From the IMG/VR virus record IMGVR_UViG_3300024252_000004, positions 124,001-188,000 of that record: a stretch of DNA of 64,000 bases, one strand, 5' to 3'. Both the position numbers and the translations under genes were made by a program. Every line of letters begins with the position of its first letter. Position 1 is the stretch's first letter. The notes under the pieces were generated by a model. That model was not told where the DNA came from. It worked only from the letters and a program-made list of their open reading frames with translations, and ran no database searches. This document shows positions 17,612 to 35,305 of this stretch, in pieces.

Positions 17612-17850
17612 TGCAAGAACCGTGCCAACTCGGCCCCAGCAAGAATCGTGCCATATAAGTTGTAAAGACTTTGTCAAGACATGAAACGATCTTTACTTGT
17701 TAAGTTTATGTCAACACTTTATTAAAAGTAAAAGTGTTGGTACGGTTATTGCAAAGAAAGAAAAGGTGGCACAGGTTTTGCATACACTGCACGAACCATG
17801 CCAACGTGGCGCGAGCAGCGGCAGCCCAGAAACCTGGCATGGATCTTGCA
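17612..17850. promoter_or_regulatory. Cluster of six sigma54 (RpoN) -24/-12 consensus sites
   Basis: Minus strand: TGGCACGGTTCTTGCA 17612-17627, TGGCACGATTCTTGCT 17638-17653, TGGCATGGTTCGTGCA 17788-17803. Plus strand: TGGTACGGTTATTGCA 17738-17753, TGGCACAGGTTTTGCA 17767-17782, TGGCATGGATCTTGCA 17835-17850. Confidence 0.8.
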
Positions 17851-17931
17851 TGGGGTGCAAAACCTTTCTAAGTAACTGACAAGGTGTTATAGATGGGTGG
17901 AGCGAAAAACTACACACAACGGGCGGACAGC

Positions 17932-18708
17932 ATGGGTAAGGGTTCACGGGTCGAACTGACCAATATGGTGATCGACGCGGCACTCGCCGCGACTGGACAG
18001 AATGTCAGTTACTCGCGGGACGTGCCCAATGGGTTCGTCTCCGCTACTTTCCCCGACCGTATGGGTCGGGACGGGAACCTGAACCCGGTGGACGGCGGCG
18101 GTAAGCTGTTGATTACTCCGGCGAAAGAGTCGAAGGCCGGGCGCGGTCAGGTGTTCTTTGACGTTCACGGGATTTTCGATGGGCTGGAGATCGGGATTAG
18201 TCTGAAGGTGTCAGACTACATCGGCGACGATCACGCCCCGAGAAACTCCATCATCTCAGGTTCCAAGGCTGAGCACTACTTCGGGATGCATCTTGCGGCG
18301 CAGCGGGGGACGTTGCTCCCGGTGATCCAGTTCTGGCAGGACGCCAGCGGGCAGTGGTGGCGCTGCGCTTTTGACGCAGGCCGCATTCTGCGGGAGCGCC
18401 GCCCGAACCTGACGGTGGGGTGGGATAAGCTGCTCCACTCCGAGATCCCGAACATGGCCGCGTGCGGTCAGCTTGATCGCCTGGAGGCGATCACGGGCGA
18501 GCGTCCGCCCATCGTGGCGCTCGGCGAGGGCGGAGCGATCGCGATCTCGCCGCTCGTGCGGGGGCGCGGGAAATACTGCTACCTGTCGGCGAAGATCAGC
18601 CACGCCCGAACGGGTCACGGGTGGACGCCCGTGGACGCCCCTCGCCTGCCGGAGAGCTACGGCGAACTGTTGGAATGGACCGGAGAGCAGGGTGAGATGA
18701 TCGGCTGA
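17932..18708 (+). CDS. Putative PD-(D/E)xK restriction-endonuclease-like protein
   Basis: FFDVHG...GISLK resembles a D...SxK nuclease active site; the ATG at 17893 overlaps the -10, so ATG 17932 is preferred. Confidence 0.45.
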   Translation: MGKGSRVELTNMVIDAALAATGQNVSYSRDVPNGFVSATFPDRMGRDGNLNPVDGGGKLLITPAKESKAGRGQVFFDVHGIFDGLEIGISLKVSDYIGDDHAPRNSIISGSKAEHYFGMHLAAQRGTLLPVIQFWQDASGQWWRCAFDAGRILRERRPNLTVGWDKLLHSEIPNMAACGQLDRLEAITGERPPIVALGEGGAIAISPLVRGRGKYCYLSAKISHARTGHGWTPVDAPRLPESYGELLEWTGEQGEMIG

Positions 18709-18789
18709 GACAAAGGGGGCTCCGGCCCCCGAACCCCGCCCCGTACCGCTTCGGCGGACGGGGCATTAGGGGCAGGAAAGGAGACGCGC

Positions 18790-19212
18790 ATGGAGCCGCA
18801 CGAGATTGAGGATCTGATTGATATTCCGGCCGCAAAGGCTGAGATCATCCGGCGGCTGGACTGGCGGGGATGGCGACGGCGGCTCTTGATCAAGCGGATG
18901 AACGCTTGCACGACCGCCGATCAGCTTTCGCGGTTCAATTGGAACCGGCTGAACCCTAACCCGGATGATGAGGATCTGATTGGGTGGGTGCTTGATGCGG
19001 CCTTTGATGAGATCAAGCGTGCGAACACGCCTCCCGAGGATCTCACGCGCCGCGTGATTTGGTTCGCGGAAGATGGCAGGACGGTGGAGCGGGTTCGGGA
19101 CATCGATCCGGCTTCACTGTTCACCAAGTCGGGCCAGCCGAACGCACAGGCACGCGATCTGCTTCACGAGATTTTCGGAGCGAGGATCGTCAAGCTCCAG
19201 AGGATGGGTTGA
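18790..19212 (+). CDS. Hypothetical protein
   Basis: GGAG RBS, GC3-rich codons. Confidence 0.75.
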   Translation: MEPHEIEDLIDIPAAKAEIIRRLDWRGWRRRLLIKRMNACTTADQLSRFNWNRLNPNPDDEDLIGWVLDAAFDEIKRANTPPEDLTRRVIWFAEDGRTVERVRDIDPASLFTKSGQPNAQARDLLHEIFGARIVKLQRMG

Positions 19213-19442
19213 TGCGGCATGAAGGATGGATCCCCGTGGGGCAGTTGGTCATTGACCGGATGCCCCTGAACCCGGCTACGCTCTCGTGTGCGAACGCGAT
19301 TCTTGAAGGGGTCGAAATGCCTCCGATCAAGGTCCAGGCGTTGCCCGATGGCCGGTGGAAGGTTCGGGACGGTCGGCACCGTGCGGTCGCGCATAAGCTT
19401 ACGGGCAAGGCGCGAATCCTGGCTAAGTGGGGCACGCGATAG
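19212..19442 (+). CDS. Stand-alone ParB/Sulfiredoxin-like N-terminal domain protein
   Basis: MPPIKV....GRWKVRDGRHRAVAH motif; TGATG coupling to the upstream gene. Confidence 0.7.
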   Translation: MRHEGWIPVGQLVIDRMPLNPATLSCANAILEGVEMPPIKVQALPDGRWKVRDGRHRAVAHKLTGKARILAKWGTR

Positions 19443-19501
19443 TTTTCTCCCCGGCAGGTTGCCAGCCTGCCGGGGAGCGGGGAGAAAAACATTTCAAATG
19501 C

Positions 19502-19538
19502 TGGCACGGGTTTTGCAGAGAATGCAACAACTGTGCCA
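19502..19538. promoter_or_regulatory. Convergent twin sigma54 site palindrome
   Basis: TGGCACGGGTTTTGCA-gagaa-TGCAACAACTGTGCCA. Confidence 0.85.
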
Positions 19539-19639
19539 ACGTGTGAGCGTGTGCCTTTTTTCTCCCTGGGGCTGGGGTGAAAAAGAAAACAACTAAGTAA
19601 CTCACAGGATGTTATATCAAGACACCGGAGGTTCTTCCA

Positions 19640-19936
19640 ATGTTTCTGATCCAGATGCCCAGCGCCGCGCTTCCCGGGCGCATGTGCTACTACGATGGCC
19701 CGGCCGAGAACCCGCAGGTCGCGCCGGTGGAGCCCATGAGACGGGCAACCATGCGGGGGACGGGGTTCGATGATGTTTGGCTCGCGTTGGAGGTCCTTGA
19801 GGACTTTCAGTTCGACGCGAAGCACGCGCCGGCCACGCTGAACATGCTCGGAGGGTACGACTACACCGAGCGGCTCATGAAGGGCTGCATCGTGCTGGCC
19901 TCCGAGGTCGAAGGAGTCGAGGTGACCCAGGGCTGA
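19640..19936 (+). CDS. Hypothetical protein
   Basis: GGAGG RBS directly after a promoter copy. Confidence 0.8.
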   Translation: MFLIQMPSAALPGRMCYYDGPAENPQVAPVEPMRRATMRGTGFDDVWLALEVLEDFQFDAKHAPATLNMLGGYDYTERLMKGCIVLASEVEGVEVTQG

Positions 19937-19942
19937 GCCGGG

Positions 19943-20037
19943 CCCTTTCGGGCCCTCAAGAAAACACCGCTGACCGCCGCCTGTGTCGGCATTCGTTCCT
20001 CCAAGGTCAGCGGTGTTTTCTTGAGGGCCCGAAAGGG
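19943..20037. repeat. Perfect 33-bp inverted repeat with a 29-nt loop
   Basis: CCCTTTCGGGCCCTCAAGAAAACACCGCTGACC (19943-19975) is the exact reverse complement of 20005-20037. Confidence 0.95.
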
Positions 20038-20067
20038 GAGAAAAGATTTTCATTCTTGATAAGGAAC

Positions 20068-20104
20068 TGGCACGGACTTTGCAGTGTATGCAAGGGGCAT
20101 GCCA
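20068..20104. promoter_or_regulatory. Convergent twin sigma54 site palindrome
   Basis: TGGCACGGACTTTGCA-gtgta-TGCAAGGGGCATGCCA, enclosed by the 13-bp IR GGGAGAAAAGATT (20036-20048 / 20107-20119). Confidence 0.85.
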
Positions 20105-20172
20105 TCAATCTTTTCTCCCTGTTGTGAGGGGGTGAAAAGAAAGACACCTAAGTAACTCGTAAGATGTTATAG

Positions 20173-20550
20173 AGGGGTGCCGCGACGGCACTGAGCATGA
20201 CAGCGAGTCGGCGCCGACGACTTCGGCGAACCGACAACGACGAAACTAATAGCGAGAGGCTGAAGTTGACTCACAGACGTGTTCATCGCTGCCCACCGTC
20301 CGGGGCATAAACGGACGGCGGCGAGTAGTCGCTTGCGTGGATACCTTGGGGCCGGCAGTCCTGGGGCAAACTAAACGTAACGATGAAGCACCGGGTGTGA
20401 GGGAACGTGAAGACAGGACTCTGCCGGGTCTGGTCATGACACCTAAAACCCTCCTTTGTGACTCTGAGCATTAACCGGGCGACGGCTCGGTTCTGAGAAA
20501 GCAAAGAACGATTCCCCGTTGGGCAGCAAATGCTGTTGCCCAGCGGGACC
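20173..20550 (+). ncRNA. Putative ~380-nt structured non-coding RNA
   Basis: Follows the promoter copy at 20165; no plus-strand ORF; multiple stems (CCGTCCG/CGGACGG, CCGGCAGTCCTG/CAGGACTCTGCCGG, AACCGGGC/GCTCGGTT) and a 3' hairpin. Confidence 0.6.
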
Positions 20551-20584
20551 TCCGGGGAGAAAAACATTTCAAGCCTCGAAAGGT

Positions 20585-20621
20585 TGGCACGGTTATTGCA
20601 TACACTGCAAATGCCATGCCA
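20585..20621. promoter_or_regulatory. Convergent twin sigma54 site palindrome
   Basis: TGGCACGGTTATTGCA-tacac-TGCAAATGCCATGCCA. Confidence 0.85.
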
Positions 20622-20739
20622 GTTTATATGTTCTTTTTCTCCCCTGGCTGAGAATCTGGGGTGAAAAAGAAAACAACTAAGTAACTCACAGGGTGTTATA
20701 GAAGGACGTGAGAGAAACACCCAAACGGAGCATCCCACC

Positions 20740-21192
20740 ATGTCCGACAAGTTCACCCCCCTCTTCGCCGATGCCGCGCCCAAGCGGCAGACCTTCACCG
20801 AGAAGGTGATGAGCAAGGCGCCCGTGTCCTTCGGCACGGACGACCTCGGGAACCCGGTCGTCGGGGTCGGGATCCCCGGCTACGGTGGCTGCGGGGCGGG
20901 GGGGGCCATGCTGCTGCGGCCGGAGAACATGCAGAACTTCTGCACGGCCATCCGCAACGCCGTCGATGGTGTGGGTCCCGACCCGCTCCAGGTCGCCGTG
21001 GAGACTATGACTCGCACGGGAGAGGGGGAGATCAGCTTCAAGCTGAGCCACATGCCCCGGTCCCAGACGATCACGATGTCGTCCGCCGAGGCCATCGAGT
21101 TCGCAACGCTCGTGGAGCGGATGATCACCGCCTGCGAGAAGAAGGCGCAGGGTCCCGAGACGGACGGCGAGGAGGCGACCGACGGGGAGTGA
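20740..21192 (+). CDS. Hypothetical protein, possible PUR/PC4-like nucleic-acid-binding fold with acidic tail
   Basis: Two beta-rich+helix units and an E/D tail; architecture parallels 32276-32863. Confidence 0.6.
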   Translation: MSDKFTPLFADAAPKRQTFTEKVMSKAPVSFGTDDLGNPVVGVGIPGYGGCGAGGAMLLRPENMQNFCTAIRNAVDGVGPDPLQVAVETMTRTGEGEISFKLSHMPRSQTITMSSAEAIEFATLVERMITACEKKAQGPETDGEEATDGE

Positions 21193-21264
21193 TCTCCGCC
21201 CCGCCCCGGGAGGCTTCGGCCCCCGGGTTCCGGGGAGAAAAGATTTTCATTTTTGATAAGGAAC

Positions 21265-21300
21265 TGGCACAGATATTGCATGTATGCAAGAGTCATTCCA
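21265..21300. promoter_or_regulatory. Convergent twin sigma54 site palindrome (right half degenerate)
   Basis: TGGCACAGATATTGCA-tgta-TGCAAGAGTCATTCCA inside the 14-bp IR GGGGAGAAAAGATT (21232-21245 / 21303-21316). Confidence 0.75.
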
Positions 21301-21417
21301 TCAATCTTTTCTCCCCTGTGTGTGTATGGGGGTGAAAAAGAAAACAACTAAGTAACTTATAAGATGTTATAGAGAGGTGCCCGACAGACCGTGGCACCCA
21401 AACTCTGGAGAAATCGC

Positions 21418-21954
21418 ATGTCCTTCACGCCTCCGCACTCGCACTCCCGCTCCGTCGCTGGCCTCGGACGGCTTCTCGTCGCCGTCATGATCTCCGGCGA
21501 CAAGGCGCTCATCGCCCTCAAGTCGGCGGAGCAGGCTGTGGATGGGGCGCGGACGCGCCTGACCGTGTGGTTCCCCAACGATGAGCAGTGGCCGACCGAC
21601 GCCGAGGACAATCGCGAGGTGATCAGCGCCTTGTCCGTCGCCAACGGGGAGGTGAAGCACGCCCGGCTGATGCTGGACGGCGTCAAGGTCTCGCGGGCCG
21701 CCGGCCTCGACTTCCTGACGAGCCTGCACGAGGAGGTCGCGGCCTGCTCTGACCGCCTGTTCGTCAACCCCTACACCGGGAAGGGCGGAAAGACCTACAT
21801 GGCGTTCTTCGGCGAGGGCGACGACATCGAGCACCGGGGCCAGACCCACCGCGAGTTGCGGGACACCCTCCGCGCGAAGATCAAGAAGGCGGGCCTGGAT
21901 CCGGTGAAGGTCCAGGCGGACCACGGCTACGGCCGAGGGCGTGGCCGGCGCTGA
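21418..21954 (+). CDS. Hypothetical protein
   Basis: GGAG RBS before ATG 21418; strong GC3 codon bias. Confidence 0.8.
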   Translation: MSFTPPHSHSRSVAGLGRLLVAVMISGDKALIALKSAEQAVDGARTRLTVWFPNDEQWPTDAEDNREVISALSVANGEVKHARLMLDGVKVSRAAGLDFLTSLHEEVAACSDRLFVNPYTGKGGKTYMAFFGEGDDIEHRGQTHRELRDTLRAKIKKAGLDPVKVQADHGYGRGRGRR

Positions 21955-22127
21955 GCCGCACCCTGACGGGAGCTTCGGCTCCCCGAAGGGGGAGAAAAAC
22001 ATTGCAGAAGCATATGTGTATGCTTTTTCTCCCCTGTGCGTGTGTGTCGGGGTGAAAAGAAAAACAACTAAGTAACTCATAGGATGTTATTACAAGGTGT
22101 AAGGAACCCAAAAGCGGAGCATTGAAC

Positions 22128-22310
22128 ATGGACACGCCGACCATCATCATCGTGGATCTCTACGGGAAGGACGGGCGACCCGTCCGCACGGGAATCACGT
22201 TCCACAGCAACGACGAGGCGACCGCGAAGGAACAGGCTTCCGAGTTCGCGACACACCACAAGTCGCGGGGGAAGACCGTAAAGGCCCGGCGTCCGAAGAA
22301 GAAGCGTTGA
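22128..22310 (+). CDS. Small basic hypothetical protein
   Basis: GGAG RBS, KKKR C-terminus. Confidence 0.75.
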   Translation: MDTPTIIIVDLYGKDGRPVRTGITFHSNDEATAKEQASEFATHHKSRGKTVKARRPKKKR

Positions 22311-22315
22311 CGCAT

Positions 22316-22406
22316 GTGGGGCCGGGCAGGCGGACGCGGGTTCGATTCCCGCATCAGCCGGTCGCAAGCGATAGCTTGCCGGAGGGTTCGATTCCCTCCC
22401 CCCCAC
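22316..22406 (+). ncRNA. tRNA-like element with two T-arms
   Basis: GCGGG-TTCGATT-CCCGC (22336-22352) and GAGGG-TTCGATT-CCCTC (22382-22398); closing GTGGGG/CCCCAC; internal helix 22322-22331 / 22374-22382; no anticodon arm. Confidence 0.65.
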
Positions 22407-22531
22407 GGGGAGAAAAACATAACACCTTATCAAGATATGAGACTTTTCTCCCCTGCGTGTGCGTGTCGGGGTGAAAAACAATTCAACTAAGTAACTCATA
22501 GGATGTTATTCTAAAGTGTAGGAGGTTCCCG

Positions 22532-22834
22532 ATGCGAGTGCAGAACGACGACGGCATGTTCGAGTTTCAGACGGATTGCCGTCGCTGGCTGTGTATCCAG
22601 ACGACCCGGAAGGGACGGCGGGAGTTTGCTCCCCGTGTCCTCGTGCCGTATGCGTACGCCGGGAGTCTCTCTGCTCAGGCTCGCGCCGAGGGTGCGACCA
22701 GCGCGGACTTCGGAATCGTGGAGCCCAAGGTCAAGAAGCCGCGTGCGCCCAAGGCTCCGCGCAAGCCTCGTCAGCCTCGCAAGGTGAAGGCTCGGATGCC
22801 GGAGGGTTTCGTGCCCCTGGATCTGGGGCTCTGA
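22532..22834 (+). CDS. Hypothetical protein with Lys/Pro/Arg-rich (histone H1-like) tail
   Basis: GGAGG RBS; KVKKPRAPKAPRKPRQPRKVK. Confidence 0.75.
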   Translation: MRVQNDDGMFEFQTDCRRWLCIQTTRKGRREFAPRVLVPYAYAGSLSAQARAEGATSADFGIVEPKVKKPRAPKAPRKPRQPRKVKARMPEGFVPLDLGL

Positions 22835-22906
22835 ACGGCAAAAGGTCCCGATCACCAAGTGATCGGGACCTCCGGGGAGAAAACTTTTGCGTTTATCTTG
22901 ATGAGG

Positions 22907-22943
22907 TGGTATGAATCTTGCAGAGAATGCAAGGGTTGTGCCA
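22907..22943. promoter_or_regulatory. Convergent twin sigma54 site palindrome
   Basis: TGGTATGAATCTTGCA-gagaa-TGCAAGGGTTGTGCCA. Confidence 0.8.
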
Positions 22944-23020
22944 CCCAGGGGAGAAAAGATTCATATGTATATGCTGGGGTGAAAACCTTAGCACACAGGA
23001 AACTGGTAGGGTGTTATAGA

Positions 23021-23710
23021 AGGGTGCCGGAAAGACCCGGCAAACAGATGGATAAGGAGAATCGATAGAGTCTGCGAGAAGTGCGTGTCTCTCTTCTAAA
23101 CGCAACGCTTTGTAGCTCGTAATACCTCAGTCACCACGCAGGCGAATGCGTACCGGTGGTGACAGTTTGCCAGTCCGACGTGAAGAACAGCAGTGGTGGA
23201 TACCGGGAAGGGAAGCGGCAGCACCGTGAATAGCCGACCCGGAAACGCGAAATCGATAGTACAGACTCCCAGTAACGTGATACGCGCCCTTCGGGGAAAG
23301 CTTAACCAGTCTGTCTCGTAAGTGCATGATACCAAAGTGCAGTCCTTTAAGGGATGTAGCAGGCAACCGGAGCCGAGAACACCGAAAGGCAAATCCGGGA
23401 CTGAGGAAATGAGGTCGAAAAAGGATCGAAAGTCTGCGATCACCACCGCCATGGCGGGGTCAATCCAGGCGACGGAATCTAAGCTACTCGGTTAAGCAAC
23501 CTGAGACTAAAGACTTCCGGCGGGACTCTGCCGACATAGATAACTATAGAGGATGGACACGGAAAAGATGGGCTGCCCGGTGCAGACCAAGATGTCCATA
23601 ACATTTGCGCGAAGAGGTAGCTCCTACGAAGGCAAATCCTGTAAAGTTACCGCCCCCCACTCACGCGCCTTTGGCCGGTCATGAGTGGGGGGCGGCTCCT
23701 TTTGTTTTCC
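23021..23710 (+). ncRNA. Putative ~690-nt large structured non-coding RNA
   Basis: Runs from the promoter copy (23012) to a terminator (23650-23710); no credible ORF; long-range helices CCTCAGTC 23125 / GACTGAGG 23399 and GTAGCT 23112 / AGCTAC 23482; UUCG/GAAA tetraloops. Confidence 0.7.
23650..23710 (+). terminator. Intrinsic terminator
   Basis: 14-bp stem CCGCCCCCCACTCA / TGAGTGGGGGGCGG followed by CTCCTTTTGTTTT. Confidence 0.75.
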
Positions 23711-23822
23711 CCGTATGTCAAGCTTTTCTCCCCTGCGTGTGCGTGTCGGGGTGAAAAACAATTCAACTAAGTAACTCATAGGGTGTTATATCAAAGTATA
23801 ACAAAACCAAAGAGCAATCAAG

Positions 23823-24452
23823 ATGACTATCGCCGGTGATAGCCGCGACACGCGGAACCCTCAGAAGTCCTGGGTCGCTTGGACGGCGTCTCTCTGGGCT
23901 CAGAAGATCCTGCGGGCCGAAGTAAATCGTCCCGAGGTAGTGTCTCTCACGGGGGACTATGTCCAGGCGCACATGGAGGAGCTTTTGCCCTTCCATCGTC
24001 GGCATTTCTTCGAGATGGATCCTGTCCAGCTTCGCAAGATGCGGCGGAAGTTCAAGCGGCTCCCTCGCACGTTCACACGGGACGAGATCAGCGACACGAC
24101 CATCCATCAGGGGAACATCTTCAAGACCGACGTAGTTTCGGATGCCGATGGGGCGTATTACGACTGGGACATCACCGGCTCGATTCGTGAGGCCATCAAG
24201 TATGGTCTTGAAGATGCTGTGTGGGACGCTTTTGAGTCTCCGGGGACTCGGTGCATGGCTCTGACGGTTTCCCGTCGGATGCCGGGTGGCAAAGCGAAAA
24301 CGTCGGAGCTTTGGCGGGAGATCGTCAATGGGATCGGCGGAGTGTTCGGAGACTCTCGTGTGTGGGAGTTCGAAGAGCCGATCCACTACGGCCGGGCACG
24401 CCTTGGCTGCGGCAACATGATGCTCATCCGTGCGGTCATCCGCGAGCGGTGA
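23823..24452 (+). CDS. Hypothetical protein (possible class I methyltransferase-like fold)
   Basis: VVSLTG..., FFEMD, IHQGNIF and YYDWD fall at strand ends as in a Rossmann fold; weak call. Confidence 0.55.
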   Translation: MTIAGDSRDTRNPQKSWVAWTASLWAQKILRAEVNRPEVVSLTGDYVQAHMEELLPFHRRHFFEMDPVQLRKMRRKFKRLPRTFTRDEISDTTIHQGNIFKTDVVSDADGAYYDWDITGSIREAIKYGLEDAVWDAFESPGTRCMALTVSRRMPGGKAKTSELWREIVNGIGGVFGDSRVWEFEEPIHYGRARLGCGNMMLIRAVIRER

Positions 24453-24482
24453 AAAGAGCAATAGAAGATGTAAGGGGGCAAA

Positions 24483-25389: not shown

Positions 25390-25391
25390 TC

Positions 25392-25601
25392 ATGGGCAAG
25401 AAAGAACCCCTGATTGAGACGGCGGAATGCTGGTGCGGTAAAACTGTAACGTGTTCGTCAGAGGATTTCGGAAAGCCTGACGTGGTAGTCCCCGGATGGG
25501 TTTCTTGGAAGCCTATCAAGAAAGAATGTTCGTGCGGAGAGTCTCTGATCTTCGGAATGGACTTCGACAAGTTTCTGAACCTCTTTGAGGTGGAGTACTG
25601 A
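25392..25601 (+). CDS. Small Cys-rich (zinc-finger-like) protein
   Basis: ECWCG...ECSCG; GAGGA RBS. Confidence 0.7.
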   Translation: MGKKEPLIETAECWCGKTVTCSSEDFGKPDVVVPGWVSWKPIKKECSCGESLIFGMDFDKFLNLFEVEY

Positions 25602-25787
25602 ATGGTGTTCTACTACCTGATGTCTCGCGGCATCTTCGCTGGCCTGATGGCCTATGGCTACGCCCACTACGAGAGCGAGATCTGGATCTGGGCAGGACTC
25701 GTCGCGCTGGTGCCTTTCTTGGGCGAAATCGTGATGATCGGGTTCCTCGTTTTCACGATGTTCTTTCTGTTGGGGTCTTTCGCATGA
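25602..25787 (+). CDS. Small membrane protein
   Basis: Two hydrophobic segments; GGAG RBS. Confidence 0.7.
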   Translation: MVFYYLMSRGIFAGLMAYGYAHYESEIWIWAGLVALVPFLGEIVMIGFLVFTMFFLLGSFA

Positions 25788-26170
25788 AGTACGGACTTTC
25801 TCTCTCTTTCTGTGTGCGTGCGATCATTGATCGCGAGATCACTCTCTTCGAGATCGCTGGCATCATCTCTGCGACAAAGATGGAGTCGCCGGAGGAAGCG
25901 TACGAGCAGTACGGAAAGAGCTACTGGTCTGAGGCGTCAGAAGATGATGTGATGGTGGTCCTTCGGGAACTCTGGCCCCGAGTGATTCAGCCACGCATGT
26001 ACGGTCTTCCGCACCACAATATCTCCAAGGGAATCTGGTTGGAGGTTGCGCATGACCGGCTCCCGGTGCTCATCGAGGCGCGGCACTGTGCCTACTGGAT
26101 GGAGGGAACTGGTAACGAGCCCGCCATCGGTATGATTCGAAACGGTGGACTCTGGAAGTTTCTGGCCTGA
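25784..26170 (+). CDS. Hypothetical protein
   Basis: ATGA coupling, 128 aa. Confidence 0.75.
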   Translation: MKYGLSLSFCVRAIIDREITLFEIAGIISATKMESPEEAYEQYGKSYWSEASEDDVMVVLRELWPRVIQPRMYGLPHHNISKGIWLEVAHDRLPVLIEARHCAYWMEGTGNEPAIGMIRNGGLWKFLA

Positions 26171-26327
26171 GCCTACGCCGAGCCTCCAATCAAGGAGGCT
26201 CGGTCGGGGAGAAAAGATAATCATTCTTGTGAAGGTATTCTCCCCGAAGCACAGATAGGGGGTGAAAAACAATTCAACTAAGTAACTCATAAGATGTTAT
26301 AGAGAGGCACAGAATCGGGAGCAGAGA

Positions 26328-26843
26328 ATGGATATTCTTTCGAAAGTCGGCATGGTGGTTGGGGTGACTGCGCTTTGCGCTTCGCTCTACTCTGCTTACT
26401 CTCACTTCTACGATGGGAAAACCGTCCCCGAGAAGCTCCCGATGGTGGGGCAGGCTTGGTGGGTGGAAGGAAAGGGGACCGTTCTGGTCGCAGAAGTCTA
26501 CCCTGCGGAAGATCGGATCGTCTACAAGACCAAGAACCACAAGGGTGGATGGTCGGACGATCTGACTACTGAGTCTACTCTCGGGCAGTTCATGAACTAC
26601 TCTCGGGTCAACAAGAAGATGACGACTCACGAGTCCGCTCCTGAGAAGAAGGATCGGCGTCCGATGGTGGGTCAGATCTGGGAAGTCGCCGGCTTCGGTG
26701 ATGTGCGAGTCCTTTACTGCGACGGCTACTCCGTTAGCTACAGCTACAAACTGGATCCGTGGAGAAATGAGTCGAGTGAGACTACGGATCTCGAACTGTT
26801 CTACCACTACGGAAACGTCAAGAAAGAGAAGGAGGCCAAGTGA
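26328..26843 (+). CDS. Membrane-anchored protein with two internal repeats
   Basis: N-terminal hydrophobic helix; PMVGQAWWVEGKGTV / PMVGQIWEVAGFGDV repeat. Confidence 0.8.
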   Translation: MDILSKVGMVVGVTALCASLYSAYSHFYDGKTVPEKLPMVGQAWWVEGKGTVLVAEVYPAEDRIVYKTKNHKGGWSDDLTTESTLGQFMNYSRVNKKMTTHESAPEKKDRRPMVGQIWEVAGFGDVRVLYCDGYSVSYSYKLDPWRNESSETTDLELFYHYGNVKKEKEAK

Positions 26844-27169
26844 GTCTACCGAAGCTTCGCATTGGCAACATCGTCCACTGGAATGGCAATCCTTGGGGCG
26901 GAAAGGTTATCTCGAATGGATACGATCTGAATGGAGGGCTCGGGTTCTACTGTATCATCAAGGCTCCCCTTCAGCCCGTGCGCAGGGGTGGGCGTCCGCT
27001 CTGGCTGATCTTCGAAGACGGAACGGTGAGCCCTTCGCTGGGGGATTCCGAGCCTCTCATGTCCCTGCGTGTGAACGGTATCCCTTACCCTCTCGTCATC
27101 GAGGGAGAACTGGAGACGTACACGTTCGAAGGCGAGGGTGAACTCAAGTTCCTTCTGGAAACCCTGTAA
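26840..27169 (+). CDS. Hypothetical protein
   Basis: GGAGG RBS, GTGA coupling. Confidence 0.75.
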   Translation: MSLPKLRIGNIVHWNGNPWGGKVISNGYDLNGGLGFYCIIKAPLQPVRRGGRPLWLIFEDGTVSPSLGDSEPLMSLRVNGIPYPLVIEGELETYTFEGEGELKFLLETL

Positions 27170-27193
27170 ACTTCTCAAACCCGCGAGTAACTG

Positions 27194-27370
27194 ATGCTTA
27201 GGCTTCTTTGGGCCCTTGTCAAATGGGGCATCTTCAGTTGGATGATCGATGTCAGAGCTTTCGGCTGGCACATTTTCCCCAGGGAATGGTGTGCTTGGGC
27301 TGAATGCACTTCGAAAGAGTGTTTGGCTCTGGATGACTTCGATGCAGCTATCTTTCGGCTCAAGGGCTGA
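27194..27370 (+). CDS. Small hypothetical protein (58 aa, not in ORF track)
   Basis: MLRLLWALVKWG...RLKG, ends at the cassette boundary. Confidence 0.5.
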   Translation: MLRLLWALVKWGIFSWMIDVRAFGWHIFPREWCAWAECTSKECLALDDFDAAIFRLKG

Positions 27371-27459
27371 AGGACGGGGAGAAAAGATTGGAGGGTGAAA
27401 AAGAAAACACACAGGAAACTTATAAGATGTTATATGAGGTTGTATTCTCCGGAGACAAT

Positions 27460-27771
27460 GTGATTCCCAACAGCAACATCCCGTCCTACGCAATCCCCTT
27501 CCACATCGGCGTCTGCGGTCTGATCATCGCCTGGGCCCTCGGCGTTGAGGCTGCCAAGTTCATCACGGAGGCCGTGATCACGCTGATCGGTGCGCCGATC
27601 CACTTCGCCCTGTGGACTTTCGATGCTGCGATCGACGCGGTCTACCTGAACGGCTACGAGTACGACCATCCGGTCGATGTCAATGAGCGTGCTGCGTTCG
27701 CTGTCGCGTCCGGTCACAGTGGGTTCGCCCACCGGCCGAGTTCTCATATCAGCGGATGGCGAGGCTACTGA
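27460..27771 (+). CDS. Membrane protein
   Basis: GTG after GGAG, downstream of a promoter copy; hydrophobic helices. Confidence 0.7.
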   Translation: MIPNSNIPSYAIPFHIGVCGLIIAWALGVEAAKFITEAVITLIGAPIHFALWTFDAAIDAVYLNGYEYDHPVDVNERAAFAVASGHSGFAHRPSSHISGWRGY

Positions 27772-27902
27772 GCCTCTCCCGCTCCGGCTGCGGCCGGAGA
27801 TTGGGGAGAAAAGATAAGCATCCTTGTCAAGGAGTGAAAACCTTAACCCCCAAGAAACTCATAAGATGTTATAGAATGACACCAAAAGATATCGAGGAAA
27901 CC

Positions 27903-28346
27903 ATGAAGTCTCTGCTCAACAGTCTGAACAAGTCTCTCCCTTCGATCATGGGATCGAAGAACCAGACGATGATCGATGCTGCTGTGCTGCTCAAGGCATC
28001 GATCACCGATCAGATCAACGGCGGTGGCCCGAAGGGCTGGGTCTGGCAGGAGACCGTGAGCGACAGCTTCGTCGCCCTCGATCTTCACCATCCTCAGCGC
28101 GGAAAGATCCGGGTCTTCTCGGCTTCGGAAGCGTGCTGGGACTGGCGACAGTATCTCGGTCGCGGCTACAACATGGGCACCGTTAAGCTGCCAAATGGCG
28201 GGAACGAGCCTGTCGGACAGTACCGGAATTTCAAGACGGGATTTCGGAACATCGTTCAGATCGCGAAGATCCGGTGGGGATCCATCACGGTCGCGGACGA
28301 GAAGCGGAAGGTCAACGACCTCAAGGGGAAATTCCATTGGGGCTGA
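27903..28346 (+). CDS. Hypothetical protein
   Basis: GAGG RBS before ATG 27903 (alternative ATG 27876). Confidence 0.75.
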   Translation: MKSLLNSLNKSLPSIMGSKNQTMIDAAVLLKASITDQINGGGPKGWVWQETVSDSFVALDLHHPQRGKIRVFSASEACWDWRQYLGRGYNMGTVKLPNGGNEPVGQYRNFKTGFRNIVQIAKIRWGSITVADEKRKVNDLKGKFHWG

Positions 28347-28561
28347 ACGAACCGAAGTTCAAGACCTACGACGAGCGGAACCGTGCAGGCTGCTGTGCGC
28401 GGGGAAGCTGCGAAGAAAAGCTGTGTCCTGATGACACATGGATCAACAGCCTGAACAACAACAAGTACTGCGGTCCCTGCAAGGACTTCTTTTACTTTAG
28501 GCATGACCGATTCGCGACCGGAAAGATCCAGAGAAAGTGGACCCTCATGCCTTCGGGCTGA
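28337..28561 (+). CDS. Small Cys-rich hypothetical protein
   Basis: CC..C...C...C..C pattern; start uncertain (TTG). Confidence 0.5.
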   Translation: MGLNEPKFKTYDERNRAGCCARGSCEEKLCPDDTWINSLNNNKYCGPCKDFFYFRHDRFATGKIQRKWTLMPSG

Positions 28562-28609
28562 GGGGATTCACCCTGTCGGGGAGAAAAGATATACATTCTT
28601 GATAAGGAT

Positions 28610-28646
28610 TGGTACGGTTCTTGCACACACTGCAAGACCTATGCCA
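28610..28646. promoter_or_regulatory. Convergent twin sigma54 site palindrome
   Basis: TGGTACGGTTCTTGCA-cacac-TGCAAGACCTATGCCA. Confidence 0.8.
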
Positions 28647-28749
28647 TATAGCCTTTTGCCTATGCCCACCGGGGAGAAAAACTATTCATGTAAGTAACTC
28701 ATAGGGTGTTATATCAGGCCGTGAGAGCAACCTACCCGGAGAGTGCAGC

Positions 28750-29073
28750 ATGGCCCGACCGACCTACTTCCTGATCGATGACGATTCGCTGGAGACCTAC
28801 ACGACCCTGGACGCGGAGGATCTCGACAACTGGGCTGTTCTGGTGAACGGTGCCATCGTCTCCATCGAGGCGGACGAGGAGGACTGTGAGATCCGCATCG
28901 CTGAGATCAATCGGGAGGGTGACAACCTGACCAACGATCTGGGCTTCGGTGCCGAAACGCAGTGCGACGACGGCGACGACGCCGACGACGACCAGGGCGG
29001 AGTCTGGGGCGACTTCGACAACACGGTCGGTGCGGGCGAGTGGGCCGACAAGGCCGTCCAGAAGTCCTGGTGA
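28750..29073 (+). CDS. Very acidic hypothetical protein (possible DNA mimic)
   Basis: D/E-dominated 107 aa; GGAG RBS. Confidence 0.75.
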   Translation: MARPTYFLIDDDSLETYTTLDAEDLDNWAVLVNGAIVSIEADEEDCEIRIAEINREGDNLTNDLGFGAETQCDDGDDADDDQGGVWGDFDNTVGAGEWADKAVQKSW

Positions 29074-29363
29074 GTCGCCGTCTCGCAATCGTCCTCGATC
29101 CCGACAATAGCGATCCGGCCTGGGGTGCGGCTGAGGAGGCCGCCTTCCGGCGGTTCACCGACGAAAGCCACTACCCGGAGTCAGCCGAGGGCAATCCTGT
29201 TCCGGTTCTGGAAGGGGAGAGGATCCCGATCTACGATCTGATCGAGGCCGCCCGAGCCCTGGTGGACTGTGCCGATCACACCGGCTGTACCCCTGACCTC
29301 GCAGTTGTGGATTCCGATCCACTTTTCAAGCTCAAGCGTGTCCTCGACAGCATCGGAGAATGA
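29070..29363 (+). CDS. Hypothetical protein
   Basis: GTGA coupling; GC3-rich frame. Confidence 0.7.
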   Translation: MSRRLAIVLDPDNSDPAWGAAEEAAFRRFTDESHYPESAEGNPVPVLEGERIPIYDLIEAARALVDCADHTGCTPDLAVVDSDPLFKLKRVLDSIGE

Positions 29364-29890
29364 CAGTGATCCCCTTCGTCTCGCATCCATCGGGGAATGA
29401 CATGAGCGCCCCAGAAATCGATTGGGACAACCAAGACCTGATCTCGAAGTTCATGCTTGACATGGATTCCGGAAATGTCCTGATTTCTTTCGCCGCGAAC
29501 CTGAGCATGGCAACTGCCCATATCGCTCCGGAAAACTTCTCTGCGTTCGTGGACGCATACGAGAAGCTTGCGGCGATGGATCCCAGTGAGCTTCAGGGGA
29601 ATGAGGTTGCCGTATGGCAGGACGGGAAGGTCGTTCAGGTGGTGGGATTCCCTGACCTGAAGCCCACGGACTGGTACATCGAAGCGATGCTGGCAACGGC
29701 GTACATCAAGTTTCGCGACGGAAAGGGGATGTTCGAAGATCGTACCCGCCTCATGTGGCATGGTCCGATTGGCACCCGTGGAACCTTCCTTGTCGAAACC
29801 TGCAACATCCAGAAGGTGGCCAAGATGCTCCGAGCAGCGATCCCGCTCGTGGCGGCGGCTGTGAAAACCATGAAGGAAGGTACCGAATGA
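29360..29890 (+). CDS. Hypothetical protein
   Basis: ATGA coupling, GGAG RBS. Confidence 0.75.
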   Translation: MTVIPFVSHPSGNDMSAPEIDWDNQDLISKFMLDMDSGNVLISFAANLSMATAHIAPENFSAFVDAYEKLAAMDPSELQGNEVAVWQDGKVVQVVGFPDLKPTDWYIEAMLATAYIKFRDGKGMFEDRTRLMWHGPIGTRGTFLVETCNIQKVAKMLRAAIPLVAAAVKTMKEGTE

Positions 29891-30145
29891 AGCCCCTGAA
29901 AGAAGAGGATGCCCAAGCCATTCTCGCTGCGGCTTACAAGGCTGCGGCGGAAAAAAAAGAACACATGGCCCGTTATCCTCGATGTCTGCAAGGAGCGGGA
30001 AATCGAGTTCGGTTGGGCTTCCATGTTCTCCCTGATGACCGATTTCTTCTACGAAGATGTGCGTGAATGGAGTGAAGGAAACTACGGAAAGGACGCCATC
30101 TATTTCTACGCTCTGATTCCAGAAGACGAAAGCCATTCGGGGTAA
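29887..30145 (+). pseudogene. Frameshifted hypothetical gene (+1 shift at an A8 run)
   Basis: MKPLKEEDAQAILAAAYKAAAEK joins KNTWPVILDVCKEREIEFGW... if one A of 29951-29958 is removed. Confidence 0.65.
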
Positions 30146-30304
30146 GGTCTACGAGGTGGGGGAATAGTCCCCTCCCTCCGGGGAGAAAACTATTACAAAT
30201 TAAGCAATGTTTTTCTCCCCGAGCCAGGAGCGGGGTGAAAAGAAATACACACAAGTAACTCATAGGATGTTATAGAGAGGCGCCTCCAATCATAGAGAGT
30301 CTCA

Positions 30305-30596
30305 ATGAATCGCCTCTTTCGCGTCTTCGTCTTCCTGGCCGCCACCGCCGCCCTTTTCGTCGTTCTTCCGGGGTTCAACCCTTCGACCCTGAACGAGATC
30401 ACGACCAGCGGCCTCGGCACGGTCGCGAAGGGGTTCCCTCGTGCCGGAGGTCTTCAAGCACCCCGGTGCATGTACCTTCGAACCGGCATACACGGATTCG
30501 ATGACGTACAGGGTCAGCTACATCGTGGGAGGACTCGTCTTCGCCTACGTCTTGGGGAAGCTGATCCAGAAGAAGAAGAAGAAGAAGAAGAAGTAG
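30305..30596 (+). pseudogene. Frameshifted membrane protein with poly-Lys tail (+1 shift at TTCCCTC)
   Basis: Removing one C at 30436-30438 gives ...KGFLVPEVFKH...IVGGLVFAYVLGKLIQKKKKKKKK*, with the GC3 bias of neighbouring genes. Confidence 0.65.
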
Positions 30597-30714
30597 GGAG
30601 TCAGGGCTTCGGCCCTCCCTCAGGGGAGAAAAAGATTGCATTATCGATAAGGGGTGAAAACCTTAACACACAGGAAACTCATAAGACGTTATAGAGTGAC
30701 ACATGGAGAGGGTA

Positions 30715-30873
30715 ATGTGGTCATACAGTGAAGCTTCAATCCTCGCATCGCTTCCGCTTTTCGCGGTTGCAATGCTGATTGACTTCGAAGTCTTCGCTGT
30801 CCCAAGAACGACCATCTATCTCCTTCCGCTTATTCCGTTCGTGACGTTTCTGTTCTCCCGAGGTAAATACTGA
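30715..30873 (+). CDS. Small membrane protein (52 aa, not in ORF track)
   Basis: GGAGAGGG RBS, two hydrophobic segments, TGATG coupling. Confidence 0.65.
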   Translation: MWSYSEASILASLPLFAVAMLIDFEVFAVPRTTIYLLPLIPFVTFLFSRGKY

Positions 30874-31637
30874 TGGACATCGAACGATTCAAGAAGCTGG
30901 CAAGTCAGGCGCGTAGCTTCCGAGGTCTCATTGACTTCGCGGACCCCTACTGGGAGTCCTCCGTTTTCTTCGAGATTCCCTCGGCCAATGAGAAGGACGA
31001 GTACGCTTGTCCGCTCGCATCGTCGGACAATCTGGATTTCCTGGCAGGGATGTTCGGTGCGGGTAGCGACCTTCACGTCTGGAACTGCGTGTTCGTGTCT
31101 GAGCCTTCCGAAGAGGTTCGGGAGAGCTACAGTACCCACGGCAACAAGATGGCGCGGTACGTCCTGTGGACGGACAACCCAAGGTATCGCTCCGTCGATT
31201 TGATGAAGAACTTCATCCGTGACTTCACGCTCGGTTGGCGGCTGGCTCTCGCGCCCATCCGTGCGGCAGAGAAGGCCGCCGCAAAGGAAGCGGAAGAAGC
31301 CTTCCAGTCTCGCTGCGATGATTGGGTGAAGGTTTTCGGAGATGCCATCCAAAACTACAAGGTCGATTCGCGTGGGAACGAGTTCGCCGGGATTACCTTC
31401 AAGAAGGACCCCGACTTCAGAGCCTTCTACAGCCGCGTGACCTCGAAGGTCATGACGGCAGAGCAGTTCAGTGTGTACCGCCCCGGGACGCAGGAACTCT
31501 ATGGCAGGGGCAAAACTGTGAACGGGTCATTCGATCTGTACACGTTCGGTGCTCACCTGGAGATGTGGACCAACTGCTACCCGGATGATCCCGCGAACAA
31601 GGCTTACCGAAAGATCCGGCATCTTTGCCGGGTCTGA
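30873..31637 (+). CDS. Hypothetical protein
   Basis: 254 aa, coupled start, GC3-rich. Confidence 0.8.
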   Translation: MDIERFKKLASQARSFRGLIDFADPYWESSVFFEIPSANEKDEYACPLASSDNLDFLAGMFGAGSDLHVWNCVFVSEPSEEVRESYSTHGNKMARYVLWTDNPRYRSVDLMKNFIRDFTLGWRLALAPIRAAEKAAAKEAEEAFQSRCDDWVKVFGDAIQNYKVDSRGNEFAGITFKKDPDFRAFYSRVTSKVMTAEQFSVYRPGTQELYGRGKTVNGSFDLYTFGAHLEMWTNCYPDDPANKAYRKIRHLCRV

Positions 31638-31683
31638 CCACGGGGCTTCGGCCCACCATCTATTCTGCTGAGAGGAGAGAATC

Positions 31684-31869
31684 ATGAGTATCCCAGGTTC
31701 CGATGGTGTCCGACAGACTTACATCAGTTTGGCACGCACGATCGCAAACGGGCACAATGCTTCGCCCGAAGAGATCAGTTGGGCCATCAGCATGCTCGAA
31801 AGCTTCAAGCGCCCTTCTCCGAAGAGTGTTTGGTACCTGAATAAGCTCAAGGCAAAGGTGGGAGGCTGA
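31684..31869 (+). CDS. Small hypothetical protein
   Basis: GAGGAG RBS. Confidence 0.7.
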   Translation: MSIPGSDGVRQTYISLARTIANGHNASPEEISWAISMLESFKRPSPKSVWYLNKLKAKVGG

Positions 31870-31941
31870 CGCCCTCCCTCCGGGGAGAAAAAGATTGCAT
31901 TGCCAAAGCGGGGAGAAAAGATTTATTCTTGTCAGGAATGT

Positions 31942-31978
31942 TGGCACGATCCTTGCATACACTGCAAGAGCTATGCCG
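31942..31978. promoter_or_regulatory. Convergent twin sigma54 site palindrome
   Basis: TGGCACGATCCTTGCA-tacac-TGCAAGAGCTATGCCG. Confidence 0.8.
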
Positions 31979-33616: not shown

Positions 33617-33619
33617 GAA

Positions 33620-35300: not shown

Positions 35301-35305
35301 GTAGA

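Follow-up and report, generated by a model that had tools for sequence, protein, structure and literature searches.

The 395-kb megaphage examined here carries conserved pairs of face-to-face consensus sites which we predict to be bound by the sigma-54 RNA polymerase of its host. The same layout recurs in dozens of unrelated phages but was not found in bacterial genomes, and our searches of the literature returned no published description of it. Our analysis concerns a 64-kb stretch of the phage genome (hereafter the window), in which twenty near-consensus sigma-54 sites (TGGCAC-N5-TTGCA) are clustered (Table 1). Sixteen of them form eight face-to-face pairs and four are single. The pairs sit inside a repeated intergenic module, upstream of a conserved sigma-70-like promoter, within a high-GC island of small genes. 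From sequence alone we infer that the elements are almost certainly docking sites for the host sigma-54 RNA polymerase, whereas their purpose remains elusive.

The clustering of these sites had been pointed out in a first-pass annotation, and this observation is confirmed. A search for TGGCAC-N5-TTGCA with at most one mismatch gives 16 matches in the window against 1.03 expected from shuffles, and none of 100 shuffles reached 16. The full 37-bp unit with at most three mismatches gives 7 matches against 0 expected. If two mismatches are allowed while the GG and GC doublets are kept intact, all 20 listed sites are recovered, each with GG and GC exactly 10 bp apart and with 0-2 mismatches. Elsewhere in the 64 kb only seven two-mismatch hits are seen, which is the chance level. 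All sites are intergenic according to our GC3-based gene calls. The same holds, by the database's own gene calls, for the sites (the junction and five pairs) which fall in the available stretch of L276, a relative at 98%.

Some details nevertheless required correction. The claim that the N5 spacers vary freely is nearly right: the first spacer base is a purine, G in 14 of 20 sites and A in the other six, as in real sigma-54 promoters, while the other spacer positions vary. Site 17835, listed as single, keeps a remnant of a partner whose -24 box is lost. The centre of the pairs is not free in this phage, as it is TACAC or its complement, CACAC, GAGAA or TGTA. Moreover, the geometry is fixed only within a lineage: the centre is 4 nt in the closest diverged relatives and 2-5 nt across phages. 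The annotation also missed the larger module around each pair, the high-GC island, the conserved promoter downstream of each pair, and how widespread the layout is in other phages.

Table 1. Features of the window which relate to the sigma-54 sites (coordinates are those of the window)
Position	Strand	Feature	Details and conservation
17612..17627	-	Single sigma-54 site	0 mismatches; points left, towards the minus-strand genes (16052-17478); conserved in L273 and L283 with a changed spacer
17638..17653	-	Single sigma-54 site	1 mismatch (TTGCT); points left
17654..17737	.	Conserved non-coding middle of the divergent junction, between the leftward and rightward sites; candidate enhancer or operator region (function inferred only)	Blocks such as TTTGTCAAG, ATGAAACG and TGTCAACACTTT are invariant between the window and L273, although the flanking protein is only 39% identical; also visible in L283
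17738..17753	+	Single sigma-54 site	TGGTAC, 1 mismatch; points right, into the island
17767..17803	.	Face-to-face pair	5-nt centre (TACAC); right half degenerate (TGCAC); orthologue in L273 has an identical centre
17835..17850	+	Single sigma-54 site	35 bp (site end to the start of TGTTATA) upstream of the -10 box of the first island promoter; partner remnant TGCAA at 17856-17860, 5 nt downstream
19502..19538	.	Face-to-face pair	Both halves perfect; centre GAGAA; orthologue in L273 has a 4-nt centre
20068..20104	.	Face-to-face pair	Sense half perfect, antisense half TGGCAT
20585..20621	.	Face-to-face pair	Sense half perfect, antisense half TGGCAT
21265..21300	.	Face-to-face pair	4-nt centre (TGTA), offset 20 rather than 21; antisense half has 2 mismatches
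22907..22943	.	Face-to-face pair	The only one whose antisense half is the better match
28610..28646	.	Face-to-face pair	
31942..31978	.	Face-to-face pair	Antisense -24 box degenerate (CGGCAT)
19443..37947	.	Field of GGGGWGAAAA boxes	53 copies in the window against 0.4 expected, 52 of them here; an inverted pair of boxes (A and A') brackets every island pair, and the same bracket without a pair occurs in other modules; the A-loop-A' bracket is also conserved in L273, L281, L283 and L279
19574..19616	+	One example of the repeated promoter module GGGGTGAAAA-N13-GWAACT-N7-TGTTATA	About 21 copies in the island; those next to sigma-54 sites have their TGTTATA at 17885, 19610, 20165, 20694, 21365, 23012, 28707 and 32077; an extended -10-like TGTTATAG lies 25-45 nt before most start codons; conserved in the relatives
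17893..36000	+	High-GC island with small same-strand genes without database match	55-62% GC against 41-46% in the backbone; every island pair lies in it; island and GC step conserved in L273, L276 and L279

Comparison with relatives supports the view that the units are under selection as sigma-54 boxes. L273, a relative with 39-67% protein identity, has seven pairs at the seven orthologous positions. Box positions are identical at 144 of 154 (94%) and spacer positions at 28 of 70 (40%), and the centre is 4 nt instead of 5. Loss of the GG-N10-GC spacing in orthologous spacers had been named beforehand as an outcome that would refute the sigma-54 reading; the spacing is kept in 14 of 14 halves while the spacer sequences change. 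Two further relatives (65% and 60%) also have pairs. In contrast, the more distant L279 (49%) keeps the modules but has no pair in 11.5 kb, and its junction sites are degenerate. A set of sites which depends on one trans-acting factor would behave in this way.

These data bear on the possibility that the pairs are mere passengers of a mobile regulatory cassette which spreads by recombination between the modules. The island is indeed built from repeated, near-identical modules, module flanks can be more alike than the palindromes inside them (20035-20171 against 21232-21371), and one relative does without the pairs. However, selection acts on the boxes and not on the spacers at the seven orthologous positions, and the same layout arose independently in dozens of lineages with unrelated flanks. 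We therefore regard this explanation as very unlikely and already largely refuted.

Beyond this group of phages, the strict 37-bp pattern hits 34 viral loci. A scan with a variable centre gives at least 120 loci, with 47 lineages in all, and shows an optimum of 2-5 nt. In 185,579 bacterial and archaeal genomes the strict pattern matches only two loci, both of which are true hairpins with fully complementary N5 stretches. The purine preference after TGGCAY, mostly for G, was not part of the search pattern, but it is also found in two independent sets of phage sites (G in 95 of 136 and 29 of 44) and matches the experimentally supported Salmonella sites listed in PMC3844500.

Could the palindrome act instead as a nucleic-acid structure, either an RNA hairpin in read-through transcripts (a processing or termination site) or a DNA cruciform, with only an incidental resemblance to sigma-54 sites? 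The boxes are self-complementary by construction, the preferred centre is the size of a hairpin loop, and the location inside the A/A' inverted repeat could allow a long imperfect hairpin. Yet the N5 stretches are complementary only at the chance rate (0.21-0.29 across all centre classes), position 6 against position 32 is usually a C/A mismatch (TGGCAC against TGGCAT), and no T-run follows. There is also no covariation: the stems never change sequence across 47 lineages whose examined pieces range from 33% to 59% GC, whereas a structure would allow compensatory change. The two bacterial and archaeal hairpins look different. We consider a structural role highly improbable.

It is also conceivable that the boxes are read by something other than host sigma-54, for instance a phage-encoded sigma-54-like protein or a different host or phage DNA-binding protein which recognises four boxes on one face of the helix. 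The four boxes are spaced about one helical turn apart (3.5, 14, 24 and 34.5 in the 37-mer). A small protein with weak similarity to sigma-54 is described in one T7-like Pectobacterium phage (PMC7693777), and most of the megaphage genome lies outside the sequence examined. Against this view, the element occurs in about 47 lineages whose examined pieces share no protein except a distant terminase between three of them. In addition, a centre of 2 to 5 nt rotates the halves by up to about 100 degrees, which a rigid dimer would not tolerate. Each half matches the sigma-54 consensus, including the R after TGGCAY, and a profile built from viral sigma-54 genes finds nothing in the window or in the pair-bearing loci. 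This reading, which includes the operator for a phage-encoded dimer proposed by the first-pass annotation, is unlikely.

The interpretation given in that annotation is supported in part. It correctly took the sequence for that of a phage and the units for two convergent, intergenic sigma-54 consensus sites, and its remark that it knew of no described phage system with this layout agrees with our literature searches. Its argument that both halves cannot be occupied at once is a sound inference from known holoenzyme footprints. On the other hand, the sequence data do not show that the element is a trap, sponge or switch, and some of the evidence points towards real directional promoter use.

In all four diverged lineages which carry pairs (window/L276, L273, L281 and L283/L284), the half facing the downstream gene is closer to consensus; the mismatch totals, sense against antisense, are 3 vs 9, 2 vs 6, 0 vs 4 and 1 vs 2. 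Furthermore, the island boundary at 17.6-17.85 kb has the classic back-to-back divergent sigma-54 layout: two leftward sites lie next to the leftward genes and three rightward sites next to the island, about 90 bp apart, with a conserved middle. This arrangement resembles the divergent hycA/hypA and zraP/hydH promoters in the Salmonella table (PMC3844500), with about 90-115 bp between the outward-facing sites. Bacterial pairs are back to back with the enhancer between them, whereas the phage pairs are face to face with only 2-5 nt between the -12 boxes, so that each predicted start lies inside the partner. As a phage precedent, Pseudomonas phage YuA is cited as using host sigma-54 for part of its transcription (Ceyssens et al. 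2008, as cited in PMC10914365). The passage mentions a sigma-54-like promoter region in YuA (P015) and says nothing of pairs or arrays.

We tentatively favour a model in which the pairs are sense-biased, activator-dependent bidirectional promoters layered on top of the phage's own constitutive-looking early promoter modules. In this view, the sites face each other so closely (centres of 4-5 nt here) that only one can be occupied at a time. The better half (usually TGGCAC-G) would start transcription about 12 nt past its GC, inside the partner's spacer, and read through the A' box and the proximal promoter into the downstream gene. The weaker half (usually TGGCAT) would either compete for the polymerase or fire an antisense transcript into the 3' end of the upstream unit. 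The output of a module would then depend on the sigma-54 and activator state of the host, while at the island boundary the same sites would form an ordinary divergent control region. What the analysis itself establishes is the sequence match, the selection on both halves, their positions, the orientation bias and the distribution among phages. The presence of rpoN in the host, binding by sigma-54, mutual exclusion, the start points and the need for an activator are inferred.

Several findings do not fit this model easily. Every site in the island is part of a pair, although a single sense site would suffice for a promoter, and the antisense half of every pair does not point towards a downstream gene. 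Each module already has its own conserved sigma-70-like promoter, so sigma-54 is not needed for expression. No bEBP or sigma-54 gene was found in the window or in the other pair-bearing loci, and the megaphage contigs were absent from motif scans of IMG/VR; this is weak evidence, since about 330 kb of the genome lay outside the sequence examined and one scan was not exhaustive. No enhancer was identified for the island pairs; the conserved junction middle could be an enhancer. Across other phage lineages, unpaired sites between co-directional genes show no orientation preference (30 sense, 24 antisense, with crude gene calls), and one jumbo contig (L194) has triplets which all point against the flanking genes. 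Arrays of up to 11 sites in 600 bp, as seen in other phages, are more than a promoter needs. Lastly, bacteria have many sigma-54 promoters, yet the strict pattern found no such pair in their genomes.

The dense arrays, the lack of an orientation preference among single sites in other lineages, the L194 triplets, the failure to find the layout in 185,579 bacterial and archaeal genomes and the failure to find an activator gene would suit non-productive capture, in which host sigma-54 holoenzyme sits on the pairs as a stable closed complex and is never fired. The pay-off would be one or more of three things: titration of sigma-54 (and the core enzyme bound to it) as the genome replicates, a protein roadblock which insulates each promoter-gene cassette from read-through, or occlusion of neighbouring sites. 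The face-to-face layout would make binding independent of orientation. In line with this, the island sites occur only as pairs although all genes run one way, and each pair lies just after the hairpin that ends the upstream gene and before the next promoter, those hairpins lacking a T-run. The sites are also closer to consensus than most genuine host promoters (compare PMC3844500), which is the basis on which high affinity is inferred, and repeated decoy sites are known to titrate transcription factors (PMC3322331). However, the conserved asymmetry has no role in an orientation-blind trap, only 8 of about 21 modules carry a pair so that the pairs cannot be the general insulator, and the junction looks like a working divergent promoter region. 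The benefit of removing sigma-54 is not evident either, and about 20 sites per 64 kb is a modest number until the genome has replicated many times. We consider capture rather unlikely, and less likely than promoter use, but it remains the strongest of the alternatives.

Other known arrangements share part of this layout. Symmetric bidirectional sigma-70 promoters reportedly place two promoters on opposite strands of one short symmetric core, with divergent starts under 20 bp apart (Warman et al. 2021, Nat Microbiol); about 16 bp is predicted here. In that case the symmetry is reported to follow from the near-palindromic -10 hexamer and to be common in bacteria. Sigma-54 boxes have no inherent symmetry, so both full sites must be maintained by selection, and the layout was found only in phages. 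The intragenic and antisense sigma-54 sites of Salmonella and E. coli likewise have orientations which do not fit simple promoter use, and interference, antisense RNA or assistance to the polymerase in its search for promoters have been proposed as roles (PMC3844500). Those sites are scattered, weaker than consensus and unpaired, while the phage sites are intergenic, near-perfect, paired and conserved.

Finally, we compared the modules themselves with known cassettes. An integron attC site is not supported, as the R''/L''-L'/R' cores (GTTRRRY) are absent from the aligned modules and no integrase family was found among the window proteins scanned. The modules are closer to the PeSL cassettes (promoter-early plus stem-loop) of T4-type phages (PMC2839356, PMC4122927), with which they share a repeated early-type promoter and a stem-loop between small, variable genes of unknown function in a plastic region, a likely substrate for cassette shuffling. 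Here, the about 21 promoter modules are accompanied by an upstream GC hairpin and an A/A' inverted repeat, and the genes have no family match. The present phage is not shown to be T4-type, its modules have extra parts (the A/A' boxes and the sigma-54 pair), and the island is 10-20 GC points above the rest of the genome. L273 has one extra module without a pair, which is only a hint of cassette gain or loss.

The array of sigma-54 sites described in the first-pass annotation is confirmed. With at most one mismatch, TGGCAC-N5-TTGCA occurs 16 times in the window, whereas shuffles give 1.03 on average and none of 100 reached 16. The whole 37-mer occurs 7 times against 0 expected. When two mismatches are allowed and the GG and GC doublets are kept intact, all 20 sites that had been listed are recovered, and only chance-level hits occur elsewhere in the 64 kb. 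All sites are intergenic according to GC3-based gene calls. The independent database gene calls on a 98% identical relative (L276) confirm this for the junction at 17.6–17.85 kb and for five of the pairs, which are those covered by the stretch of L276 examined. The positions of the sites and of the other features discussed here are collected in the table below.

Sigma-54 sites and other features in the window and in related or comparison sequences (L numbers designate retrieved contigs or loci)
Sequence	Position	Strand	Feature
Window	16052-17478	-	Genes to the left of the divergent junction
Window	17340-17572		Direct repeats just left of the sigma-54 junction
Window	17612	-	Single site
Window	17638	-	Single site
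Window	17738	+	Single site
Window	17767		Face-to-face pair
Window	17835	+	Single site
Window	17893 onward	+	Genes to the right of the divergent junction
Window	17893-36000	+	High-GC island of small genes
Window	19443-37947	both	Field of GGGGWGAAAA boxes (52 copies)
Window	19502		Face-to-face pair
Window	20068		Face-to-face pair
Window	20175-20560		Stretch without an ORF, between two sigma-54 pairs
Window	20585		Face-to-face pair
Window	21265		Face-to-face pair, 4-nt centre
Window	22907		Face-to-face pair
Window	23020-23720		Stretch without a called gene, candidate conserved non-coding RNA
Window	25048-25389		113-aa island gene
Window	28610		Face-to-face pair
Window	31942		Face-to-face pair
Window	35306-35382		tRNA-Arg (anticodon TCT) at the right end of the island
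Window	57513-58802		Adenylosuccinate synthetase homologue
L003; also L021	5930-6150; 3410-3705		Sigma-54 site arrays of an uncultured marine phage group
L194	700-4650		Triplets of sigma-54 sites in a 141-kb viral contig
L279	1987-7600		Modules without pairs in the 49% relative
L080; L081	2594-2630; 6155-6191		Hairpin repeats of a high-GC Pseudonocardia MAG

The window is 100% identical to part of a 395,127-bp IMG/VR contig and therefore belongs to a megaphage. Its backbone encodes a type IA topoisomerase, a radical-SAM/SPASM protein, a UvrD-type helicase, an adenylosuccinate synthetase, a T4-type RNA ligase, a dUTPase and a SprT-like protein. GC content jumps from about 41% to 55-62% at 17.9 kb and falls back near 36 kb, the backbone as a whole lying at 41-46%. 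Inside this island all genes run on the plus strand and are small, with GC3 of 0.7-0.9. The ten island proteins scanned have no Pfam family, and Pfam and PHROGs give no function for them. The only island gene with any family hit is the 113-aa gene, whose orthologues in L276 and in the diverged relative L273 carry the RF-1 (peptidyl-tRNA hydrolase) domain, PF00472, which makes it a possible ArfB-like ribosome rescue factor. The GC step is conserved in relatives that are only 39-67% identical in protein. The island is therefore old and not a recent import.

Alignment of the eight regions and direct reading show that the pairs are parts of a larger, repeated intergenic module. It begins with a GC-rich hairpin after the upstream gene, which lacks a T-run, followed by an ‘A’ box, GGGGAGAAAAGAT, a loop, the same box inverted (A′) and a ‘B’ box, GGGGTGAAAA. 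After 13 nt comes GWAACT, and after a further 7 nt TGTTATAG, an extended -10-like element, with the start codon usually 25-45 nt later. There are about 21 such promoter modules. In eight of them the sigma-54 sites lie upstream of the -10 element, at a distance of 79-117 bp when measured from the centre of the pair. In the seven island modules the pair sits between an A box and a second box downstream of it, which is the inverted A′ in most of them but direct at 22907 and 28610. The box GGGGWGAAAA occurs 53 times in the window against 0.4 expected, and all but one copy lies in the field listed in the table. As inverted pairs it brackets a 14-75 nt loop in nearly every module, with or without a sigma-54 pair, and a related box sits 36 nt before the -10 element of each promoter. 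It is probably the binding site of an unknown phage or host factor. The architecture resembles the promoter-plus-stem-loop cassettes of T4-type phages (PMC2839356, PMC4122927). An attC-like cassette site was rejected on the basis of the alignment.

Two of the modules are followed by stretches without genes. Downstream of the TGTTATA at 23012, no gene is called over about 700 nt, either here or in relatives, and the nucleotide sequence is 73-85% identical to that of the distant relative L273. Downstream of the TGTTATA at 20165, about 390 nt lack an ORF, and the predicted RNA fold has a z-score of -3.5 against shuffles, although the primary sequence is not conserved in L273. A search against Rfam returned nothing but a tRNA.

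At the boundary of the island the genes diverge. Two leftward sites sit on the left, while a rightward single, a pair and another rightward single sit on the right, and about 85 bp of other sequence lies between the two groups. This is the layout of known divergent sigma-54 promoter pairs such as hycA/hypA in the Salmonella table of PMC3844500. However, a bidirectional promoter serving divergent operons is weakened as the general explanation, since most lineages, and the island itself, have co-directional flanking genes. The direct repeats to the left of the junction measure 16-30 nt (for example TTAGGGAAYSGCTTAAACATAAAA, twice, 30 bp apart). They look like iterons and could mark an origin or the sites of another regulator.

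Megablast of the island against cultured phages found nothing, and searches of IMG/VR and metagenomes with the phage's own promoter motif or its first island protein returned only 100% identical copies of the same phage. Diverged relatives came only from a large protein database, in which the two genes flanking the junction have homologues on other large contigs. L273, from a 406-kb contig, is 39% and 67% identical at those two proteins and shows the same synteny, GC step, modules and junction layout. It has face-to-face pairs at all seven positions orthologous to window pairs 17767 through 28610. In this orthologous comparison, box positions are identical at 144 of 154 and N5 spacer positions at 28 of 70, and the centre is 4 nt instead of 5 in six of the seven pairs. 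The 5-nt spacer length, and with it the GG-N10-GC spacing whose loss had been named beforehand as grounds for rejection, is kept in 14 of 14 halves. L281 (65%) and L283/L284 (60%) also carry pairs with 4-nt centres, plus junction sites. In contrast, L279 (49%) keeps the A-loop-A′-B-promoter modules but has no pair in 11.5 kb, and its junction sites are degenerate. It carries a short CG-rich loop (ACGCGTACGCG-like) where the other relatives have the sigma-54 pair, as well as a different -10 region, and constitutes a natural ‘pair-less’ control. So both halves of each pair are under purifying selection as sigma-54 boxes, and the elements are present or absent as a set. The 28% relative L278 was uninformative, as no sigma-54 site was seen in the AT-rich 517 bp between the gene and the upstream end of its contig.

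In every lineage that carries pairs, the half that points at the downstream gene is closer to consensus. Mismatch totals, sense against antisense, are 3 vs 9 in the window, 2 vs 6 in L273, 0 vs 4 in L281 and 1 vs 2 in L283, and the antisense half is typically TGGCAT. These counts are not independent, because the state is inherited, but they do show that the asymmetry is maintained.

The layout is widespread in phages. The strict 37-bp pattern hits 34 IMG/VR loci, two of which are this phage. The rest include a large uncultured marine group with tandem arrays of two to five pairs plus extra singles, located between a leftward replication block (primase-helicase, family A polymerase, ThyX) and a rightward lysis and packaging block. 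In an uncultured marine phage group represented by L003 and L021 (GC about 0.46, T7-like replication genes, no RNA polymerase gene in the pieces examined), arrays of up to 11 sigma-54 sites with a 46/47- or 57-bp period lie between such blocks, and a consensus sigma-70 promoter lies just downstream on the right side. A second scan with a variable centre gave at least 120 loci. Among the 100 loci newly retrieved in this way, centres of 2, 3 and 4 nt occur in 27, 21 and 20 loci and centres of 6 nt in 3, while longer ones are scattered, with small peaks at 22 and 28. The 133 loci fall into 47 clusters by shared ORFs, including contigs of 128-480 kb, and in 34 of the 43 clusters with a pair the commonest centre is 2-5 nt. 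In 24 of 46 lineages there are at least four near-consensus sites within 600 bp, and up to 11. No cultured relative was found for the other pair-bearing lineages. The nearest named phages, Roseobacter phage CRP-4 and Myxococcus phage Mx8, have no site.

In contrast, the same strict pattern, with the 5-nt centre only, gives two hits, both in one MAG, among 185,579 species-representative bacterial and archaeal genomes (596 Gb). Both are perfect hairpins whose N5 stretches are complementary, which is a different object. The high-GC Pseudonocardia MAG listed in the table has perfect 47-bp hairpin repeats that happen to contain TGGCAC and TTGCA. Actinobacteria are not known to have sigma-54, so this is an unrelated repeat family.

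Each half of the phage pairs matches the sigma-54 consensus, including the purine after TGGCAY, which was not part of the search pattern. The reading as a hairpin or terminator was rejected: the N5 stretches pair only at the chance rate (0.21-0.29) and positions 6 and 32 are usually a C/A mismatch, which makes a nucleic-acid structure very unlikely. A common phage-encoded dimer is also unlikely, since the lineages share no protein in the pieces examined except a distant terminase and the centre varies by 3 nt. Host sigma-54, most likely as holoenzyme, is the only known factor that fits. With 4-5 nt between the -12 boxes, each predicted start lies in the partner's spacer and the two starts are about 16 bp apart, and published footprints imply that two holoenzymes cannot sit there together. 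The sequence match, the conservation of the boxes, the asymmetry and the distribution among phages come from the analysis itself, whereas sigma-54 binding, mutual exclusion, the start points and any dependence on an activator are inferred.

What the pairs do remains unresolved. We tentatively favour sense-biased, activator-dependent bidirectional promoters, without holding this as more likely than not. The conserved sense bias, the classic divergent junction with its conserved middle, the coordinated loss in L279 and the precedent of phage YuA point to real, directional promoter use. Orientation-blind, non-productive capture of the polymerase (trap, roadblock or titration) appears less likely but is not without support. 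Only pairs occur in a one-way island, a separate conserved promoter sits in every module, arrays in other phages are very dense, and the layout was not found in bacteria with the strict pattern. Furthermore, unpaired sites between co-directional genes show no orientation preference in other lineages (30 sense, 24 antisense, with crude gene calls), and L194 has triplets of perfect sites about 50 bp apart in three successive gaps between plus-strand operons, all of which point against the genes. No activator or sigma-54 gene was found for this phage by two exact-motif scans, a custom profile and one alignment-based scan, although these searches are incomplete, as they left out about 330 kb of the genome and one of them covered only 80 of 268 results.

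The array is better supported than the first-pass annotation could establish, as the elements are conserved across deep divergence, are embedded in a defined module and are one instance of a phage-wide, apparently phage-specific arrangement. The interpretation put forward there is supported in part: the halves are sigma-54 consensus sites, but the proposed trap or switch is neither shown nor excluded. The sigma-54 site itself is a known kind of element, whereas the arrangement and its distribution appear to be new. Full-text literature searches found sigma-54 use by phage YuA and a weak sigma-54-like protein in a Pectobacterium phage but nothing on paired or arrayed sigma-54 sites in phages, which, given the incomplete coverage, is absence of evidence only.

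A more far-reaching possibility, which we regard as doubtful, is that the face-to-face pair is a phage-specific functional unit that evolved repeatedly in dozens of unrelated phage lineages and not in bacteria, and that captures host sigma-54 polymerase in a way ordinary promoters do not. In one version the polymerase would be locked in dead-end complexes, which titrates or insulates. In the other, the phage would fire the polymerase in both directions without a classical DNA-bound enhancer, for example through an undiscovered phage activator or through the two adjacent early-melting points 4-7 nt apart. Sigma-54 is the one bacterial sigma factor that works like a eukaryotic enhancer-dependent system, and phages are barely known to use it. 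A conserved, phage-specific way of arranging its binding sites would mean either that many uncultured phages, including several of 130-480 kb, tie their gene expression to the host's sigma-54 and activator state (nitrogen status, stress, motility), or that they neutralise that branch of host transcription. Either outcome would add a new class of phage-host regulatory interaction, and the element, only 34-37 bp long, is easy to synthesise and testable in laboratory strains without culturing the phages.

Lastly, the best PHROG of the adenylosuccinate synthetase homologue (phrog_1211, E = 1.3e-55) is the family annotated for the PurZ-type enzyme of phages that replace adenine with 2-aminoadenine. 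If the genome is modified in that way, protein recognition of the A-containing sigma-54 boxes could be affected.
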